A stretch of 64,000 nucleotides of DNA, taken from Perkinsus chesapeaki ATCC PRA-425 (taxonomy: Eukaryota; Protista; Perkinsozoa). The translations under genes were made by a program, and so were the position numbers. Location: assembly GCA_013115145.1 (NCBI GenBank), contig JAAPAO010000040.1, positions 45,983-109,982 on the forward strand. Reading direction: 5' to 3'. Positions 12,638-47,342 of the stretch are shown one piece after another; positions within the stretch are counted from its first letter, which is position 1; each line of letters starts with the position of its first letter. Below the pieces are notes generated by a model. It had not been told where the DNA came from, ran no database searches, and was given only the letters and a program-made list of their open reading frames with translations.

Positions 12638-14826
12638 TCAATCCGAGTCGGAGTCGTCATCATCGCCAAAGGTAGTCCTATGACCGGCGAACTCCTGGAT
12701 TGTTCCCTTTGCGGCCGCGGCTACGCCAGAGCCCTTTCCTTTACCCTTGCCCTTGCCCTTGCCTTTGCCACCCTTGCCCTTGCCGCCCTTGCCCTTTCCT
12801 TTGCCACCCTTGCCACTGGACTCGCGAGGCTGGTTGTAGTTGACTCTGATCTGTCGTCCCTCAAGATCGGTACCGCTGAGCTTAGTGGCCTTCTCGGCGG
12901 AGTCCTCATCACCGAAGTCAATGTAGGCGAAACCACGAGGGGCACCGGTCTCTCTATCAGTAGGCATGAAGCAGCGAGTAATGCTACCGCAGTCACCGAA
13001 GACCTCATAGAGCCAGTCCTGGGTCATAGAGAAGGGAAGGTTGCCAACGAAAACAGATGCAGACTTCTCGCCGAGCTCGTGATGGCCCTTACCCTTGCCC
13101 TTGCCGCCCTTGCCACCCTTACCGCCGGCGTGGTCGTTCTTAGGGAAGCTGTAGTTGATACGGAGATCACGGCCCTCGCAGTCCTCACCGTTCTTGGCGA
13201 CGGCCTTCTCAGCAGCGTCCTCGTCGGCAAAGTCAATGAAGGCAAAACCCTTGATCTTGCCGCTCTCCCAATCAGTGGGGAGACTGACACGCTCCATATC
13301 ACCGCACCAACTGAAGATCTGCTCGAGCCACTCCTTGGTCATAGAGAAGGGCAAGTTGCCAATGAAGACCGACTTAGACCTCTCAACAGAGTCCTGAGCG
13401 GAACCGTCATTCAACTTGGTCTTCTTGGCGGCAGGGGCCTCATCCTCCTCAGTGGTGGCCTCCGAGGCGGCGCGCTTCTTAGCAGGAGCTTCTTCCATTT
13501 CATCATCTGAAAGAACGAGAATAGACAACAACCGTGAGCAAATTCAATTTCTTACCAGAATCCTCGCTCTCCTCATCCTCCTCGGCGACGGCGGCAGCCT
13601 TGACCTTCTTGGGGGCCTCCTCTTCCTCATCAGAGTCAGAGTCGCTAGAGTCGGATTCCTCAGCGGCGGCCTTCTTAGTGGCGGCCTTCTTGGGGGCGGG
13701 CTTGGCCTCCTCCATTTCCTCATCAGAGTCAGAGTCGCTGGAGCTGGACTCTTCAACAGCGGCCTTCTTGGCAGCGGCCTTGGCCTTAGGGGCAGCCTTC
13801 TTGGCCGGGGCCTCGTCCTCGCTAGAGNNNNNNNNNNNNNNNNNNNNNNNNNNNNNNNNNNNNNNNNNNNNNNNNNNNNNNNNNNNNNNNNNNNNNNNNN
13901 NNNNNNNNNNNNNNNNNNNNNNNNACAGCGGCCTTCTTGGCAGCGGCCTTGGCCTTAGGGGCAGCCTTCTTGGCCGGGGCCTCGTCCTCGCTAGAGTCAG
14001 AGTCGCTGGAACTAGATTCCTCAACAGCGGCCTTCTTGGCAGCCTTCTTAGGAGATGCCTTGGCCTTAGGGGCAGCCTTCTTGGCCACGGGCTTCTTGAC
14101 CTCCTCTTCATCATCGCTAGAATCACTGCTGGAGTCGGACTCCTCGACAGCAGCCTTCTTGGCGGCGGCGGCCTTCTTAGTGGCCTGAACAGCAGGCTTT
14201 GTAACCTCTTCCTCATCATCACTATCGGAATCAGAACTCTCGTCCTCCTCCTTCTTAGAGGAAGCAGCTATCCGTGCCTTAGCATTGGCAACGGCCTTAG
14301 CGGAAGGAAGATCACTCGCATCAGAATCACTATCAGAGGAGGAATCGTCATCGCTTTCAACTACCTTCTTAGCAGGGGCAACCTTCGCCTTCTTGGCGGC
14401 GGGCTTCTCGTCCTCGCTGGACGAAGAATCGTCATCGCTCGAGCTCTCCGCGACGGCAGCCTTCTTAGCGACCGGAGCAGCCTTCTTGGCCTTCTTAGCG
14501 GCGGCGGGAGCAGCCTTCTTCTTGGGGGCTTCCTCCTCCTCATCGCTGCTTTCATCAGAGCTGGATGATTCAGCGGCGGCGGCCTTCTTGGTGGCAGCCT
14601 TCTTAGGGGCAGGTGTCTTCTTGGCTACTGCCTTCTTGGGTGCCGGTGCCTCGTCGACAGAAGAGTCGGAGTCGCTGCTGCTGCTGTCGTCCTCCTCGAC
14701 AGGCTTAACGGGCTTCTTCTTAGTAGCGACCTTCTTATGTACAACAGGTTTGGTAACAACCTCCTCATCTGATGAGGAATCATCACTGGAGGACTCGACG
14801 ACCTTCTTAGGCGCAGGCTTGGCCAT
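12638..14826 (-). CDS. Nucleolin/NSR1/gar2-like nucleolar protein: acidic-Ser/basic N-terminal repeats, two RRMs and a Gly-Lys tail
   Basis: MAKPAPKK start, alternating SSSDSDSD and AKKAA blocks. Two RRMs (VFIGNLPFS...KGFAFIDF; VFVGNLPFS...RGFAYIDF), GKG-rich C-terminus ending in FGDDDDSDSD. One intron at ~13508-13556. Confidence 0.9.
13729..14060 (-). repeat. ~99-bp coding tandem repeat (AVEESSSSDSDSSEDEAPAKKAAPKAKAAAKKA)
   Basis: Near-identical units flank the gap, with more diverged units on either side. Confidence 0.85.
13828..13924. other. Assembly gap (97 N) inside a coding tandem repeat
   Basis: Run of N. The same 72-bp string (acagcggccttcttgg...cctcgctagag) lies immediately left (13756-13827) and right (13925-13996) of the gap. 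Confidence 0.99.
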
Positions 14827-15618
14827 AATTAGTACGTACGAAAGGAACTGCAAAGAATACATACACAGTATGAAAGGTCATCATCAATAACCCCATCCCC
14901 GAGCTCAAGGGGGCAGTAGGGCACATAGGTATAGAGATATCATCGCCATAGCTTATTCTCACTAACAGATGCGGGGGCAATAATAACGTGGCGCAGTGAA
15001 ATGTCGTGACGCACGGCGGAGCGATGCACTGAGTGACACTTTTCAAAATCGCCGGCTCAAGGTTGCCTTGCGCGTTGTAATCGCAAGCACTGCTTGCTAT
15101 AGCTATATGAAGCACTAAAATACTATCAAAGGCGATAGGATATCATACCATTGTGCCACGATGAAAATATACAAGGACTGATCAGCAAATTACTTTTAGT
15201 AACCACCGATGATAACCGAGGCCAAATCAACGCATAGACAGCAATTACGTAACGCTAATCATGGATAATACTGAGCGTACTTGAATACACTATCGAATAG
15301 GCCACGGGAAGGTTAGCATGGTAGTGTTTATACTGCCTTCGACAAAGTCACACTAGCGCTGTTGGGCCGCCCAGCTTAGGTCTCGTAAGAGGGCTTAACG
15401 CGGACAAGGCTTCCGACTCGCAAATTTGAGGTAAAACAGAGAGGTGCCAAGAAAACGACGAAAAACGATTGCGATAACACTCGAGTGCAGTGTGGTGCTT
15501 GACAGATGAAAAGACGCAAATTGTTATAGCTATTTTCGGATCTTGGGTTCGGACGAAGCCCGAATGGCAGAAATAGCCCTTGCACGGACTCCATTGCGCG
15601 AATCACAGTTTTGCTAAA

Positions 15619-16810
15619 ATGGAAGCCTGCCCTGCCGCATTGGAACAGTTTTGGGACGGAACCATAAGGATAGCGAATTCTCGCTATGTCTCGAATCCCA
15701 GGTGCTTCCTTACAAAACTTGCTAAGGAATGCAGGCCCGAAATACAGTGCGATGCTTGCGATGCCCGAAGGTTGGTTGAGAAATACGTAAGTCTGACCTG
15801 GCTCGTCTGGAAGAGCAGATCACCGCAGTGGTGCTTTGTTCGTGGCGGCCACGGGCCCTAATAGACACTTCCGATTGCACTTTGATATGTCGTTCATTAT
15901 TTCGCACATGTAGTTCTGCTTGGATAAGATATTACGTCCCCCCAATCTTACCCCTTGGCCGTAATGCTGCCACCAAAGGAAGACTCGTAGCTGTTATAGT
16001 ATCAGGCATTGTACAGTGATACGTTATGGAGATCATTAAGATATCCACCACTGTGGTGACATGTATCTCAACGGCAACCACTGCTATTTCAGGTGATTAG
16101 GTGTGAGAAATGTCTTTCTAACTTCGTTGACGCCGAAGAACGTGACCACCAGCTTGAAACTTTTCTTTCTGATCTGGTGCACGATCACAACAGAAACTGG
16201 TAGCAAACTCCGTATAGAGGTGATCACGCAAACGTCACTGTTAGTCTGGAAGCTGCCACGGCAAGATCAAGCGTAGTTCCATCTGAAAACACCAGTTTTG
16301 AAGGTGAATCCCAAATCTTTCGCCCCTACGAATCGTAGGCTAGGATTCTAGCTGAACGCAGCGCTAACGTCACGTGCATCCCGCGTCAGTTTTCCCTTCT
16401 CAGATGAGTCTTCTTCAAGCCCCACCGCTTCAGGAACGCACGATTCTTCCAACGTACGGTCTCAACACATTTTTGCTCTTGCCATCATCTTTACAGATTT
16501 CCTCCTTTGCTCATGGAATCGATGATGATGTTGATGCCATCCAACCTCTGGGATGGACTCCACGTATGACACACATCATACCATAAGGAATTGACTTCGT
16601 GTTGTACCCTACAGACACTCAGTGCCTAGACCGACAATGGATCGATGACGCGGGGTTCAAAAGGGTCCGTGGCACGTAGGTCAACAGCACTTTGGGAAGA
16701 TTAACATTTCCATCCATCAGCTACGAGAAGAGCGAGATCTCTATGACGCCCACAAGAGCTATTCGGGACAATGGAGCAAAATGATGCGAGACGAAAATTA
16801 CGCGTAGGTT
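15619..16810 (+). CDS. Hypothetical multi-exon protein
   Basis: ATG at 15619 (MEACPAALEQFWDG...CDACDARRLVEK) followed by a gtaagt donor. Downstream segments read VDAEERDHQLETFLSDLVHDH and LREERDLYDAHKSYSGQW. No family recognised. Confidence 0.3.
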
Positions 16811-17516
16811 CGGAGGTTCTAGTGTTATAAATTAACCGGCTCGAATGGAAGTGTTGGAAAGCCCTTTTGGATAAGCACTTTGAATAAAAGTGGCGTCATG
16901 TGTTAGGAGAGACTCTCCCGTTTCAAAGGGGGCAGCATCGTCCTTCTGTTATTATCAGCTGCTCTCTTCTGTGTCCTACGTGGGGTACAAACTCCTTGAC
17001 AAAAGGCTTGATTGCGAGTGTGATGCAATACACAAAAACAATAACTGTCCTTTCCAGGACGGTGTACTCATTTGCAGGAAGACCGTACCATACTATCGCT
17101 GCGAAATGCTATCGCTTAACGGCTAATGGCCGAACAAAGGAACGGGAGATAAGGAGACCAATGAGGGAAAGGTACGCGCTGTTGATAGAATGATGTCACT
17201 CGAACAGCTTAGTCCTTTTTGACAACGGCTGCTATGGCTATTATTTGTTCTATACCATTCGAGCTAGTAAAATAGTTGCGCTTCGATCATAGAGATAATG
17301 ACTGTTCGTAATCCCAACACTGCTTTGAGTTGCCAAGTATAAATATTAACGACCAACGCAAACCTCGCCGGTACGAGACCACAGAGGGCCACCAGGCCGA
17401 CATAAAGGCAAATTATGAATCGCTCAATCCTCTCCTCCTCCTTCTCATCATCGATACCCCAAACAATGGGGATGATGGAAGAAGGAAGGTGATGATCGCA
17501 ATAAATGACAACAACA

Positions 17517-35556: not shown

Positions 35557-35867
35557 GTTTGAAATGCAAATAAGTCATCTATCTCACTTTTGTCTAGGTA
35601 CCGGTGATAGAGTATCTACTGCTTGTTCAACATTGTTTTCTTGCCACTTCATAACTGTGTGCAGTTGGCGCGGTTTTTTTGCTGAGGTTATGTTGAGGGG
35701 GTGACATATTATGACCTTTGCAGTAGAGAATAGAGAGGGTGTTGCGTTCGTCGGCGTGTTCATTGCGCTGGGGTCCCTATGCAGCCTAGCTCATTACCCA
35801 GTTCTACTGCAGCTTGAACTCTCGGAGGTTTTTCCGCAGGTTCTTTTTCTTTAGCAAGGGCTCCTCA

Positions 35868-38400
35868 CTGATCGGCTCGCCGATTACCTTGTGTGACCGA
35901 CTCAGTCATGGATGCAGCCCGACTACTGGTCAGCCCTAGTCGGCGACTAGAGCAGCCCGAGATTGAGCGTCTGACACATTGTGTCTCAGTTGTATCAACC
36001 TTGCTCACGTATTCTGCGTAGCGAATCGTGACAAGGCGTGTTGGCAGTGCCACTGCTCTGAATCAGAGGATGTTATACCGTGGCCTTATCCCATACGCCT
36101 ACTAAGCTAATAAACTATAGTACAGGACCTGTACTGAGTCAGTACAGGTACCAGTACCAGTACTACAGGTACTGTACATTGGCATACATACAAAGAGCGT
36201 GTTGCCTGGACCAGGCACCCTGGTCACTATTTTCCACCGGTAGCTGAATCAGCTCTGAGTTTTCCGAGTTTTCTTGTCAGGGCTGTCAGGTAGAGCGTCC
36301 CAACCCGACTTGGGACTAGGTTGCCGGTCTAAACTAGGTTGACCGGGTCTTCAACAACGTTCCTTTTTGAACTGTGTGGGTCTGACTTTTATGGTCCATT
36401 AGTCATGGAACTCCAATGACGGAGTCGCCTGGCCGTTGATTTGCAAGAACCTCCACCTCTCAGTTAAACTGAGTCAGTTTGGTTGGAACTTGAGTACTGT
36501 ACTCAGCAGACCTGTCTGGCAGTACCTGGCAGATAATGCCTGCTGGAAAATGGCTTTCGCTTTGCCCATCGTGCGTTATCGGCCGAGGTGGGGCCAAGCT
36601 GTCAGCGAAAACCGACGACCACCATGGGATTCCGGTCTCGACTCGATACTATCGAGGGCTATGTCTTAAGTGGGATGAGTTTTACCAAGCAATGAAGCGC
36701 GACTCTATCTAGCTTTCTGTTGTTCAAGGCATTATAAAGAGAACTCTCGATATCGCGGTCCCGCTCCTCACTGCGAGGCAAGTCTCAAAGTTTGAATTAA
36801 ACTGACTTCGAAAACTATTAAGATCTCGGCAAAACTTCTCCAAATTTCTCCTAGATTTCTCCATCGATGGAGAAATTCCGATGTTATCGATCGATAGTAT
36901 CGATCGATAACTCAGCTTTGCGGAGACAACGTCACGCCCTCCAAGTAAGCAGCGCGGCTCATTTTAATCTCGCCCAATTATTGGGCGATGATGTATTTGG
37001 CCCCAATACATTGACCGAACAAGTATGTGATTAACTAAGAGTGGTCCTCGACCGCTAGTGTTGTTTCCAAAGAGATAGCGCATGGAGAGGTGGTAAGATT
37101 TGTGGCGTGCGCACTTTTCAGCACACAACTAAGGGACAGAGCTAGGCTAGCGGGATCATCCTATGCACATTCCCAGGACTTCCGCTTGACGCCAGTTTAA
37201 CAATATCAGAATCCCGTCCCAACCCGCTCCGGAGGAGGCCTGCGGCACGTTCAGCCGTGCGATCGGACCCTGTTGTTCACAGGTCAGTCTCTTCGCACTG
37301 CATAATATGCTGCAGGCTGCCACGGTCGCTGATGTGTACTGGTGTAGCTTGGCACGGTTTCGTGCCAGCCAACTACTCCCGGTGCACTATCAGTGTCCGG
37401 CCTACGGCTCCACTCCACACCCTCTAGAGCAGGCACCAATGAGAACAACTTTATTGTGAAGTCCTGTACTACACAGTTTGCTGCAAACAGTTTGCCGTGG
37501 AATGTTTGGTAACTGCGACCTTTTCGGGCACCCTTGAAGACTAACTTATGAATGATGCTGCGAGAGATAAGGCTAATGACTCATTAGTAATGAGCCATTA
37601 GTAATGACTATCAGTATCGGTGTCAGCCACTCGTTAACTACCTTCTCCGACGTCATGCAAGAAGCCTTCTCGAAGAAGGCGCACGAGAGGATTCGAAGGA
37701 GAGTATCGGCGACGACTCGAAGACCTTTACGGTTAGACCAATACGGTTAACGATTACGAGAACTTTATCAGTGAAGTCGGAGGTTCTAAATGTATACTCC
37801 TCATCATCTCTATGACGTAGTGAGCATCGGTTAAATAATGCCTACTGTCACTATACACTTTCCACTTGTTACGAGAAATCGAACGGTTCCGACAGTAAGT
37901 TTACTGTCAATCCGGCAGACCAACACCCCCGTCATGGTGATGAGGTGATATGGTGTTGTATATAATCTAAAGCGTGATTCCTGATCAGATCAGTCTGATT
38001 ATCAAGCGGATATCATTGCTATGATAGCAATGCTATCCCACTGCTCCGAGGATCTCAATAAACTGTAGGGTCTACAGTTACTGTAGTACAGTCTGTAGCC
38101 TACGGAATGTACTACAGTGACTGTAGGCATCCTCGGGGCCCTAGTGGCTCGGAGCCTATCCGGACTCCGACGCTCAGTGATTCCGAGTCGGGGATCGAAG
38201 TTCCAGTTTCGAAGTTCCATTTGTTAGTGTTAGAGAAAGACTCATAAAATTTTTATGTTGGGGGTACCCAAAATGCACATTCACTGCCTATATCAGATTC
38301 ACATTTGATATAGGCTACCGCGCTGAATAATGCAACTTAATAAGCTGAGCCTATATTTGTATTATACAGAAATATAATATAGCAAGGTAATTGCGTTAGC
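35868..38400. repeat. Dense field of short perfect inverted repeats (mostly odd palindromes with a 1-nt centre)
   Basis: At least 21 hand-verified palindromes with arms of 6 bp or more and a 1-nt centre, e.g. 36127-36149 (11-bp arms), 36883-36911 (14-bp arms), 36970-36988 and 38014-38032 (9-bp arms), plus an even 22-mer at 36855-36876. No credible ORF. Confidence 0.9.
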
Positions 38401-39356
38401 GATTCCGGGAATAGGGCTGACTCCGTCCGGGTCTCGGGTTTAACTGTTGGTAGTTTACCCCTTGAACCAATAGACATACCTCGCGGCTCGATCGTTATGC
38501 ACTGTTTTACTAGCGATTTCGTAACATGTATATCACAAACAGGTCATCTTTCCGAGAAGTTTTCATCCTTTTCGATATGCTCGTATTTACTCGGCTTTCG
38601 CGTGTGTAAGGAAATCACATCGAATAGAATAACTTACATGTTCAGCTCGGAGTTATGTGCTGTCCGAGTTGTGCATATTTCGCACTTCACGTACTAGATG
38701 GAACACACAGCACCGGCTACCAGCACGTCATGTCTCATACTCTAACACGTGCATAGACGTATACTACAGCTCCTGGGAGTTGATCAGCTTGATCAGATCA
38801 AGTTAATTACATTTACCACCGTTTCGTGGGATGATTATACGAGCATTGCGGTCTTGCCCTTCAGACACTGCCGTACCACAGTTTCTCTACGACAGGTACT
38901 ACTATCGCAAACCAGCTTGTCCGAATGGTAGGTGATCAGGAGCGCATCGGCACTCCCAATGCTTGGTAGCAAGTTGGTAGGCGCTCCGAACGGGGGTAGG
39001 AAGCCCCCATTCCTTCAAGTGGAGCGTAATGGGCATTACTAATAGCGGAGTATTCACATGCAGTGCGTAACATCATACCGACGTTTAGCCTGCCATACCC
39101 GTAGAAGTGGTCGCACTTGAGGATGCCCCATACAGTCATGATCTGTCTGATGTCTTTTGATAGTAGCAGTGCATTACCTGATCGATGAGGCTTGAGTGTT
39201 GAGTTGGTTCGAGTATTTGCGGGTCTACCTGTGGTTGCTGACTTAATCTGGGTTATTTTTCGTATCTGTAAGATCCTAATCGATCACCGAAACGGTTGTG
39301 CGAGCGGTTTAGTGTCGCTACTGAGAATCGATCCCGGGTCGTCGCAGTTGTGCAAT

Positions 39357-44561
<5,205 letters not shown>

Positions 44562-44582
44562 AACACACTACCAATTCCCAAC

Positions 44583-45074
44583 TCAACGGGCTTCAGTCTT
44601 ATTGAGCTCAGCTGTACAACATTTCAGCAGCAATCGACAGCGATCGACGACGTTCCAGACGGTGTTTTGATACTTCTGCTGATCAGGCTCAACGAAGAAG
44701 CCGCGGAAACGGAAACATGATGGAGAGAGCTCACCTGAAGTGCAGCCGAAGAAAAAGGCGAAGGGCCGTGGGAAGTCCGGTAGGGTGCTCTTACCTTTGG
44801 AGTAAGCGATACACTGCTCTACAGCTGCCACCACACCTGCGAGGTCTCGAGGAAGCCAGCATGACCGGGTATCAGTTAAATCAACGGACTCTGCTGCATC
44901 CAGTAGGAAAAAGAAACCTACTGTCAAACGTAACTGGGATACTTGGCGCTCCTTCGCCAGCAGTGCAGCCCTCGCAGGTTCAACCTCTAAAGCCAAGTAA
45001 CCCGTGCCTGCCCGAACCTCCGCCCCCCCCCCCCACTGTATCACTGTCACATTTGCAGGCGTAAAATTGTTCAA
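44583..45074 (-). CDS. Possible small hypothetical protein
   Basis: 163-aa ORF converging on the ISWI 3' end; contains intron-like segments; no family recognised. Confidence 0.25.
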   Translation of the reverse strand: MNNFTPANVTVIQWGGGAEVRAGTGYLALEVEPARAALLAKERQVSQLRLTVGFFFLLDAAESVDLTDTRSCWLPRDLAGVVAAVEQCIAYSKGKSTLPDFPRPFAFFFGCTSGELSPSCFRFRGFFVEPDQQKYQNTVWNVVDRCRLLLKCCTAELNKTEAR

Positions 45075-45155
45075 GGAGCGTTTCCTCGCTACGTCCTCTC
45101 AGGACTGTGGAGTTTGGTTTGCCAAAGTGTCATAGTCGCGCAGACAGCGTTACAC

Positions 45156-47109
45156 ATGCGGATCGTGCTAAGTGTGGTAGCACTGGTGGGTGCTGCGGCT
45201 GCTGCTTTCGACCCATGTGATGAGCTCGGGCTCCCTTTGGCACGGGAAGGACAGTACGTCCGCCCGTCCGAGTACGCGAAGAGAATCAACAAGTTTTTCG
45301 AGACTAATAACTACACCCGGTCTGTAGGGAGGAGGGGTCGCTTTACCTTCCACAACGATTCTGATATGCGTTATATTCTAATCGGCGGCATAGGTGACGC
45401 TTTGGAGTGCATTCCAGACTGGAGCCAATGTGACGAGCACGCTGATGAATGCCTCGGAGCTTAGGTTCCGCGGTACCTCGACCATATTCCAGGCCTAGTC
45501 TTTGCCAATGCCGAGGAGTTCAGACATAATTGCCCTCAATTGGTGGGAAACCAGCCACGGGCTCCCAGTCATTTCACACATCTCTCAGCTGTTACTGTGT
45601 TTGCTGTTGGATGTTGAACGGTCTCTCGAAGCGACCTACGCCTCAGTCTTCACCGACGGTGCTACCCATCTACTCGCTACAGCCCAACGGCGCTGGGACG
45701 AGCTAATACACTGGACGCTAATTCGTTGACCGAGCAATGGAGCATGATAGATACTCTCGATTGCGGTCGAGCGATCCGGTAGTCATCGGCCACGCGGAGC
45801 GATTCCCCCTGAGCTGGCTCGGCTGGCCGATAGACGAGGCTGAAAGGCGCGCACGTGTGGGACCGAAAGGTCGCGACTGTCTTCGACAGGGTTTGGTGGA
45901 TCAGGCATACTATCGGCGAATAACAAGTACACTTGACGATCCTAAGAAGCGTGAGGAGTTCTTCACACTTTTATACAAGATGGGCGACGTGCCCTTGTCG
46001 GACGAGGTGGAATACACCGCACGGTGGAGAATTAGCTCACTTGTCAGCAGCTTTGGGAAGAGGGCTTTGCTGAGGTATTAGATGCACTTGATTCCGTAAC
46101 AGGAATCGAGTATTTCCCATATGGCGGGACGCTCCTGGCATTGGTGAGGTGAGGCTGCAGCTAGTTCGCCCAGGGCTTCATACTCCCGCCTCAGGTACGG
46201 AGCTCGGACGGGAATCCTTTCCGAGGGGAAACAGGATGTGGTGAGTCCCACAATCGCTAGTCGATGCAAGCAGCGGAAGTTGTATGCTGGCAGGTTGAGC
46301 GCGATGTGGATATACTCATCGGCGTGACATCCGCAGCTGACTGGTCCAACAGAGTAGCCTTCGACCTCGCTACAGCGCTCACCGATCACCGAGGGTGGAA
46401 GGGCTGCTATCAGAAGGCTTCGATACCTTTGGACGCCATGGTTGCCGGTATACCATACAGAAAGGACCTCCTACAGTGTTTGAAGGTAATCCTGCTAACG
46501 GATCCAACATCATGAAAATAGTTTCTCATTTCCAGACTAGCCCTGACGGGCAACTTCTCTTGGCCGATTTCTCGACGTACATAATTGTGAACGACTCAAC
46601 TTCCGACACTCACAGCTACCTCCAAAAAGGCTGTTCACAGGATGGGCGGTGCGCCACGGTAGAGTTTCTGAGCCGCCTGGCGAACATCTCGAACAATGAG
46701 GGGTTGGTGTATCCCTTCGAGAAGTGCAAGGCGTACAACAGGACAGTTAACTGCCCGAAGAGGCCTCTGGATGTAATCGAAGAATCGCTACCAGGAATGG
46801 CAGTATCTTCAGTTCACTCGAGCCTTCCACAACTTGGGTCAGCATGACTGCCTCGCCATCCCCAGTCTGTTCAGCCGTGATGACCGCGATCCTCGCAATG
46901 TCGACTTCACTAGTCGTGGCCTCAATGCTCGCGATCTCGACCTCATCGAGGCTTCGTCTGAGCTGTTGCAAAAGGGCGGCTTTCTCTCTATGTATGACGA
47001 GCTGCAGTCTGAGAGATGCGCACAGGTTCGGCGTTCTTTAGATAGCAACATAACATGTGTAGGATGTGGTGTTAGTTTGCAGAAATATGTTACAGCTGCA
47101 ACAAAGTGA
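45156..47109 (+). CDS. Secretory-pathway LicD/fukutin-like nucleotidyltransferase-fold protein
   Basis: Signal peptide MRIVLSVVALVGAAAAA. Spliced core GIEYFPYGGTLLALVR|YG...QDV|VERDVDILIG matches the LicD GGTLLGxxR...DxDxDI pattern; Cys-rich C-terminal part. Splicing of the 5' exons is not fully resolved. Confidence 0.62.
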
Positions 47110-47342
47110 ATGCGGTCTCTTATGGCGATATGTCGCGTTCAGAGTTCTTGCTAATATCCTTCCCGTCCATATGGCGATGAGGGGTGATCGTCCGGACGGC
47201 CTTCGCAGTTAGGCTGGTCGTGCCCAAAGACTAATGCAACGCAACAACTGCTTCAAGTACACTGAAAGTGTTCTTTCCTCAACTCTGGTTTGGTCCATAA
47301 GACCTTAGTTTTATACGGGAAAACTCGATCCACGAATACACT

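Follow-up and report, generated by a model that had tools for sequence, protein, structure and literature searches.

Transposable elements of the hAT type duplicate 8 bp of target DNA (PMC10368747; PMC4423477) and form hairpins on the DNA that flanks them (PMC4763223; PMC5499845), and the palindromes in Ac/Ds footprints have as their central base the complement of the one that bordered the element (PMC5873905). Hermes produces 8-bp duplications with the target preference nTnnnnAn (PMC10368747). In this study, these elements were compared with a field of short palindromes in Perkinsus chesapeaki (assembly GCA_013115145.1, contig JAAPAO010000040.1), located between the genes for Sec24 and ISWI, both on the + strand, within a stretch of 64,000 nucleotides that is referred to as the window and in which all positions are given. 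The field probably consists of accumulated excision footprints of cut-and-paste transposons of the hAT type.

Twenty-five perfect palindromes with a 1-nt centre and arms of at least 6 nt were found in positions 35868-38400, where 0.6-1.8 are expected, out of 46 in the whole window. They include all 21 that had been listed in the original prediction, each of which is a perfect arm-N-arm' palindrome (21 of 21), and four additional ones, which start at 36044, 36203, 37483 and 38243. Palindromes with loops of 0 or of 2-8 nt (maximal palindromes with arms of at least 6 nt, whole window) numbered 11-18 per loop class against about 15.6 by chance, so that the excess over chance that had been claimed was borne out, and stratification by loop length in the window left loop 1 as the only enriched class among loops 0-8. 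The arm lengths of the 1-nt-centre palindromes peak at 7, with 13 palindromes of arm 7 and eight of arm 6, where the rest of the window would predict 0.14 and 0.77. The palindromes had also been described as chained, and paired centres do stand exactly 7 nt apart at 36466/73, 37482/89, 37580/87, 37987/94, 38023/30 and 38079/86. The view that the field is not a satellite held as well: a satellite or other repeat family was rejected, as the arm sequences are mutually unrelated, no direct-repeat family is present, and comparison of the interval with the whole window gave neither a self-match nor a second copy of the interval. Contigs of two independent samples were identical to the window over 35627-37138 and 37384-38431 (0 differences), and the palindrome field is therefore not an assembly artefact.

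The chained pairs make up one 22-bp structure built on an 8-bp word T, which reads T[1-7], the reverse complement of T, and T[2-8], and is referred to here as a scar. About half of the palindromes of the interval belong to this exact structure, and the peak of arm lengths at 7 fits it because 7 is the target length minus 1. A general form of the model was scanned over word lengths (k) of 4-13, with 50 dinucleotide shuffles as the control. Only k=8 was enriched, with 3, 7, 12 and 23 matches at up to 0, 1, 2 and 3 mismatches, respectively, versus 0, 0, 0.18 and 2.6 in the shuffled sequences. When word length (k = 6-10) and offset (0-3) were varied together, k=8 with offset 1 alone stood out, with nine matches versus 0.03 in shuffles at up to one mismatch, and offsets 0, 2 and 3 were at background level. 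A weaker signal at k=10 with offset 3 appears to be that 22-bp structure with one extra base at either end.

The scars are restricted to non-genic DNA. Of the 15 scars in the window with at most two mismatches, 14 lie inside the 3.6-kb gap between Sec24 and ISWI, between 36203 and 38802, and none is found in the roughly 19 kb of genic DNA that follows the field on its right. Iterative collapse of scars to 8-bp words recovered 13 events, including three that are perfect, six with one mismatch and four with two; nested events are found among them at 37573-37608, where the older CTAATGAC scar has one mismatch once the inner scar is collapsed, and at 38072-38126. The net gain of DNA from the 13 collapsed events is 182 bp, and the scar density is about 4 per kb of intergenic DNA, with nesting. 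Targets were deduced from the 42 half-sites of 21 non-overlapping scars at four loci in three species. C occupies position 1 in 21 of the 42 half-sites (p=4e-4), T occupies position 2 (or A position 7) in the same number (p=4e-4), and 14 of the 42 start with CT (p=5e-7). The target consensus is 5'-CTnnnnAG-3', a subset of the Hermes-type nTnnnnAn.

Three features that mark a hAT footprint have their counterparts in these results: the 8-bp target duplication in the enrichment of k=8 alone among k = 4-13, the palindrome centred on the complement of the element-adjoining base in the enrichment of offset 1 and loop 1 alone, and the target preference nTnnnnAn in the occurrence of T2/A7 in half of the half-sites. 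Insertion of an element would duplicate an 8-bp target, T = xDy, and upon excision the transposase, which we infer to be of the hAT type, would nick one base into each flank, after which each flank would be sealed as a hairpin whose unpaired tip is the complement of the outermost target base. If the hairpins escape trimming near the tip, a full fold-back copy of the target would be kept at each end, and the two fold-back tails, both the reverse complement of T and complementary over 8 nt, would anneal and have their gaps filled. Each event would turn an 8-bp site into 22 bp, a net gain of 14 bp, and would produce two overlapping 1-nt-centre palindromes with 7-nt arms and centres 7 nt apart. 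The 3.6-kb gene-free gap would have gathered 13 or more of these events, some of them inside older scars.

Several points weigh against the assignment of the field to hAT excision. A scan of the window for terminal inverted repeats with an 8-bp duplication gave two matches, the same number as in the reversed-sequence control, and no resident element, and none of the 26 scanned open reading frames (ORFs) of the window contained a transposase domain. Two P. olseni haplotypes show no 14-bp insertion or deletion in 15.7 kb of mostly genic DNA, their intergenic fields being unalignable. Since Mutator-like elements (MULEs) also form hairpins on their flanks and can duplicate 8 bp, it is the geometry and the target motif on which the hAT assignment depends. 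The uniformity of the Perkinsus scars is also unlike the heterogeneity of Ac/Ds footprints in Candida albicans, where 28 different ones are reported (PMC5873905), and unlike excision in rice, which nearly always involves deletions or filler DNA (PMC4423477). Furthermore, 13 solitary 1-nt palindromes are left after collapse, versus about 0.8 expected by chance, and with most of their arms at 6-7 nt they are not what random hairpin nicking would be expected to give.

The solitary palindromes have mostly arms of 6-7 nt and in a few cases arms of 8, 9, 11 or 14 nt, and none of them has a third arm. Either the third arm of this class would have been lost later, or the fold-back would have been copied from the target copy of the other end until the template ended. 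A derivation of the compound pair at 36119-36149 from nested standard scars was attempted and failed. The palindrome at 36883-36911 is a candidate for a long-arm footprint or a compound event. The 13-mer TCGATA-N-TATCGA is present at 36643-36655 and again at 36891-36903, 248 bp apart and with complementary centre bases, and both copies form palindrome cores; it may be a favoured target word that was hit twice.

Comparison of the orthologous Sec24-ISWI intervals, which had been suggested together with the original prediction, was carried out for both P. olseni and P. marinus, and the sequence of the interval was found not to be conserved, with no homology between positions 35749-39311 and the orthologous intervals of the two species. 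Downstream of the Sec24 orthologue of P. olseni (L002), homology ends at window position 35748, and the next 1.27 kb is unrelated in sequence to the window yet contains three scars and four 1-nt palindromes; on the ISWI side of P. olseni, homology restarts at window position 39312. In both of the P. olseni assemblies L005 and L007, palindromes and scars are found upstream of ISWI, but they are not the same ones, and the two assemblies can be aligned only in and near genes and not in mid-interval. L006 shares 99.96% identity with L005 and gave no further evidence. The complete Sec24-ISWI interval of P. marinus (L008: 16470-18919) contains no scars and only two 1-nt palindromes. An unrelated P. 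marinus locus of 19.9 kb contains eight scars at up to one mismatch (two of them perfect) versus 0 in mononucleotide shuffles, and 11 of its 12 scars with up to two mismatches are outside called genes. The scars thus occur in all three species and are genus-wide, they are tied to dispensable intergenic DNA and not to the Sec24-ISWI locus, and the DNA that bears them turns over fast, a pattern that speaks against a conserved origin, centromere or boundary element.

Differences between haplotypes were observed in two species. A 2,988-bp segment of P. olseni (L005:1510-4497), bounded by the 5-bp repeat CACCC, is missing from L007 (4453-4457); it contains all scars of its intergenic interval, and a further difference of 371 bp adjoins it. 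In one of the two P. chesapeaki samples (S1), a second contig of 5,895 nt, with a depth of 72 versus 90, has six differences from the window in 106 nt (35627-35732), departs from the window at 35732 and meets it again only at 38906, over 26 nt. This contig is probably a second P. chesapeaki haplotype with entirely different intergenic DNA.

Sequencing depth indicated that only two parts of the interval, at about 36990-37470 and about 38402-38509, are repeated elsewhere in the genome (Table 1). A target duplication flanking the first was looked for and not found, and one contig joins 37073 to 37400, omitting 326 bp. The second measures about 106 bp, lacks a terminal inverted repeat and is not copied elsewhere in the window; it could be a mobile element that still sits among the scars. 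The suggestion that the field itself is the body of a non-autonomous element was not upheld, as the window holds no other copy of it and no terminal repeats with a target duplication were found. An exact 10-mer, TAGGGCTGAC, with inverted copies at 35929 and 38412, was considered as an element boundary and rejected, since the copies face outward and its count at up to one mismatch is at chance. In P. olseni, an element of 827 bp (L004:3868-4710, GCA_013115125.1) carries perfect terminal inverted repeats of 11 bp, ATACCCTGTCT, and is flanked by an exact target duplication of 8 bp, TGGAGGTT. No Pfam match was obtained for its ORFs, and its terminus was not found in the P. chesapeaki window or in L001-L003.

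An origin of the scars in another superfamily that forms flank hairpins and 8-bp duplications, mainly the MULEs, is unlikely. The 8-bp scar word does fall within the MULE duplication range of 8-10 bp (typically 9), Muta1 folds the DNA at its flanks into hairpins and duplicates 8 or 9 bp (PMC5499845), and the 827-bp P. olseni element, with its 11-bp terminal inverted repeats, 8-bp duplication and lack of a Pfam match, could belong to any superfamily. However, the word lengths typical of MULEs, k=9 and k=10, gave no signal, the target motif of the scars matches the hAT preference nTnnnnAn, and the rule that the tip carries the complement of the adjoining base is documented for Ac/Ds (PMC5873905), with no record for a MULE found in the literature searched. 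Excision of Muta1 is precise in more than 90% of events (PMC5499845), in contrast to the imprecise +14 bp scars, although this is a weak test because host repair could differ. An explanation with no mobile element at all, in which a host nuclease (such as a domesticated hAT-like or RAG-like enzyme) or recurrent break repair makes 8-bp staggered intergenic breaks that are repaired by fold-back, is very unlikely. It would agree with the high uniformity of the scars, with their restriction to intergenic DNA, and with the lack of any element at or near the scars of the window, but the geometry indicates that a staggered cut in a single copy would re-anneal or give +8 bp instead of the scar structure. 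Because the target core occurs twice in direct orientation within the scar, as T[1-7] and T[2-8], a pre-existing duplication, and so an inserted element, is needed. We know of no host nuclease system of such a kind.

The fold-back mechanisms put forward in the original prediction fared unequally. Transposase hairpin footprints, formed by hairpin opening and fill-in, are favoured by the fixed 22-bp scar, whereas free template switching is insufficient because the 8-bp length is fixed and a target motif is present; a polymerase snap-back step may still be part of the repair of scars. Template switches during replication are able to produce inverted duplications, but replication template switching or polymerase snap-back at random sites, with no site-specific cut, gives no reason for exactly 8 nt and a 1-nt offset each time, the only enriched combination being k=8 with offset 1; it would not be expected to yield a CTnnnnAG target motif, nor to leave about 19 kb of intron-rich genic DNA untouched. 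We regard this explanation as highly improbable. Selection of the palindromes as functional sites, namely cruciforms or dimeric-protein sites at an origin, centromere-like region or transcription boundary, had been the other alternative proposed earlier. The location of the field, with one gene ending before it and another starting after it, and the fact that palindromes are typical of dimer binding, would be in line with it, but it is scarcely credible given that the arm sequences all differ, that no homologous sequence occupies the orthologous position in P. olseni or P. marinus (and in P. marinus no scars either), that the same structures occur in unrelated intergenic DNA of three species, and that one entire scar field of P. 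olseni lies in a 3-kb segment missing from another haplotype.

A domain scan of the flanking ORFs identified Sec23/24 trunk and gelsolin domains upstream of the field and SNF2 and SLIDE domains downstream, where the annotated ISWI gene spans 39435-47212 on the + strand. The scar field extends to about 38810. The longest ORF of the palindrome interval encodes 77 aa, and Rfam and tRNA searches of the field gave zero matches. A 174-aa ORF at 39192-39716, which overlaps the annotated start of ISWI from just upstream, has no homologue and no Pfam domain and is probably non-coding. A weaker cluster at 14131-16906 contains seven 1-nt-centre palindromes and one scar (16325, target CCTACGAT, one mismatch). 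It sits downstream of a low-complexity region (12.5-14.9 kb) that has long ORFs on both strands and a 97-N gap (13828-13924).

Table 1. Positions in the window of the intergenic interval, its scars, solitary palindromes and repeats
Positions	Feature	Details
35749..39311	Species-specific intergenic interval, Sec24 3' end to ISWI 5' region; contains the entire scar field	P. olseni homology stops at 35748 and restarts at 39312
36203..36224	22-bp scar, target TGCCTGGT, 1 mismatch	
36459..36480	Perfect 22-bp scar CTCAGTT/AAACTGAG/TCAGTTT, target CTCAGTTT	
36635..36656	22-bp scar, target GTATCGAG, 1 mismatch (majority rule)	
37475..37496	22-bp scar, target AGTTTGCA/C, 2 mismatches	
37573..37608	Five-arm chain, two nested events	Perfect inner scar CTAATGAG (37573-37594) within older scar CTAATGAC
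37658..37679	22-bp scar, target CAAGAAGG, 1 mismatch	
37980..38001	Decayed scar with 3 mismatches and a pair of palindrome centres spaced 7 nt apart	
38009..38037	Four-arm chain including perfect scar of TTGCTATC (38016-38037)	
38072..38126	Nested cluster, three successive scars by iterative collapse; overall an imperfect palindrome with 27-nt arms	
38333..38354	22-bp scar, target CAGCTTAT, 2 mismatches	
38781..38802	22-bp scar, target TGATCAAG, 1 mismatch; final scar of the field	
35936..35950	Solitary palindrome, arm 7, no third arm (1/7 matches on either side)	
35973, 36044, 36056, 36242, 36491, 37981, 38243 and the long-arm ones	Other solitary palindromes	
36119..36149	Compound pair, arms 8 and 11, centres 11 nt apart	Standard scar of GTACAGGT with 8 additional nt, TGAGTCAG
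36883..36911	Perfect palindrome, 14-nt arms	
36970..36988	Perfect palindrome, 9-nt arms	
about 36990..37470	Dispersed repeat; scar- and palindrome-free stretch	About 5-14x single-copy depth
38405..38510	High-copy repeat of about 106 bp, about 40-160x single-copy depth	Exact 8-bp direct repeat TAGCGATT at 38397-38404 and 38511-38518

It is possible, although we propose it only tentatively and with considerable doubt, that new intergenic DNA in Perkinsus arises through a self-reinforcing build-up of scars, in which scars draw further insertions, intergenic DNA turns over completely between species and haplotypes, and repair with a single outcome is specific to the lineage. Because CTnnnnAG is the reverse complement of itself in form, each scar triples the local target-like words, and growth of the field could be driven by this symmetry. 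About 3-4 nested events are present in the field versus about 0.6 expected, the expectation being a rough hand estimate. In such a lineage-specific repair pathway, one broken end would be copied to the 5' end of the target copy at the other end, and the tails would anneal over 8 nt; copying to the end of the other target copy would also explain why solitary arms stop at 6-7. If the field was formed by hAT-type excision as proposed, Perkinsus genomes would hold a countable record of single transposon visits that can be recognised without any reference sequence, a record that variable repair erases or makes unreadable in most organisms. Both transposition rates and target choice could then be estimated from one genome, bursts could be dated by scar decay, and the share of intergenic DNA built by repair could be measured, which, counting only the clear scars, would here be 182 bp or more (5.5% of 3.3 kb). 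It would also mean that hairpin-capped breaks are repaired with unusual uniformity in a relative of dinoflagellates and apicomplexans, one species of which, P. marinus, is culturable, and that scar fields account for the intergenic regions that cannot be aligned between Perkinsus haplotypes and species.

Among known systems, V(D)J coding joints (RAG/Transib) resemble the scars in that a hairpin-sealed flank opened off-centre gives rise to palindromic (P) nucleotides. RAG and Transib make 5-bp duplications and short P tracts, and they differ from the Perkinsus field, which has no k=5 signal. Templated inverted insertions at break junctions are also described for synthesis-dependent microhomology-mediated end joining, as outlined in PMC2943611; compared with that outline, the template length in Perkinsus would be set by the target duplication, and the break would be made by a transposase if the field was formed by hAT excision. 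The likeness is closest to Ac/Ds, Tam3 and Hermes, which share with the scars the 8-bp duplication, the flank hairpins, the P-nucleotide palindromes on the complement of the element-adjoining base, and the motif nTnnnnAn. In Saccharomyces cerevisiae, according to the summary in PMC5873905 (citing Yu et al. 2004 and Lazarow et al. 2012), Ds footprints include hairpins opened far from the tip, with arms of up to 20 nt and joining by microhomology. As that summary presents them, the long Ds palindromes are a subset of many products and were obtained experimentally, whereas the Perkinsus scars are a fixed natural pattern across the genus.

The hAT footprints of plants, yeasts and animals are heterogeneous, usually with a palindrome of 1-3 nt and often with deletions (28 types in Candida albicans). 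Perkinsus differs from them in having one dominant outcome, with the whole 8-nt fold-back on both sides, a join through 8-nt complementarity, and always +14 bp, and its scars, nested in places and numbering about 4 per kb of intergenic DNA, are unusually dense beside the footprints of Ac/Ds, Tam3 and Hermes. No paper describing a uniform +14-bp scar in Perkinsus was found in a literature search, and a search on end-joining genes in Perkinsus returned nothing useful. In conclusion, the chemistry is already known, and it is the single uniform +14-bp outcome and the nested density that differ from the footprints of Candida and rice. Along with an unexplained class of solitary palindromes, the window contributes the grid test of word length and offset, the CTnnnnAG motif, and the orthologous comparison of three species.

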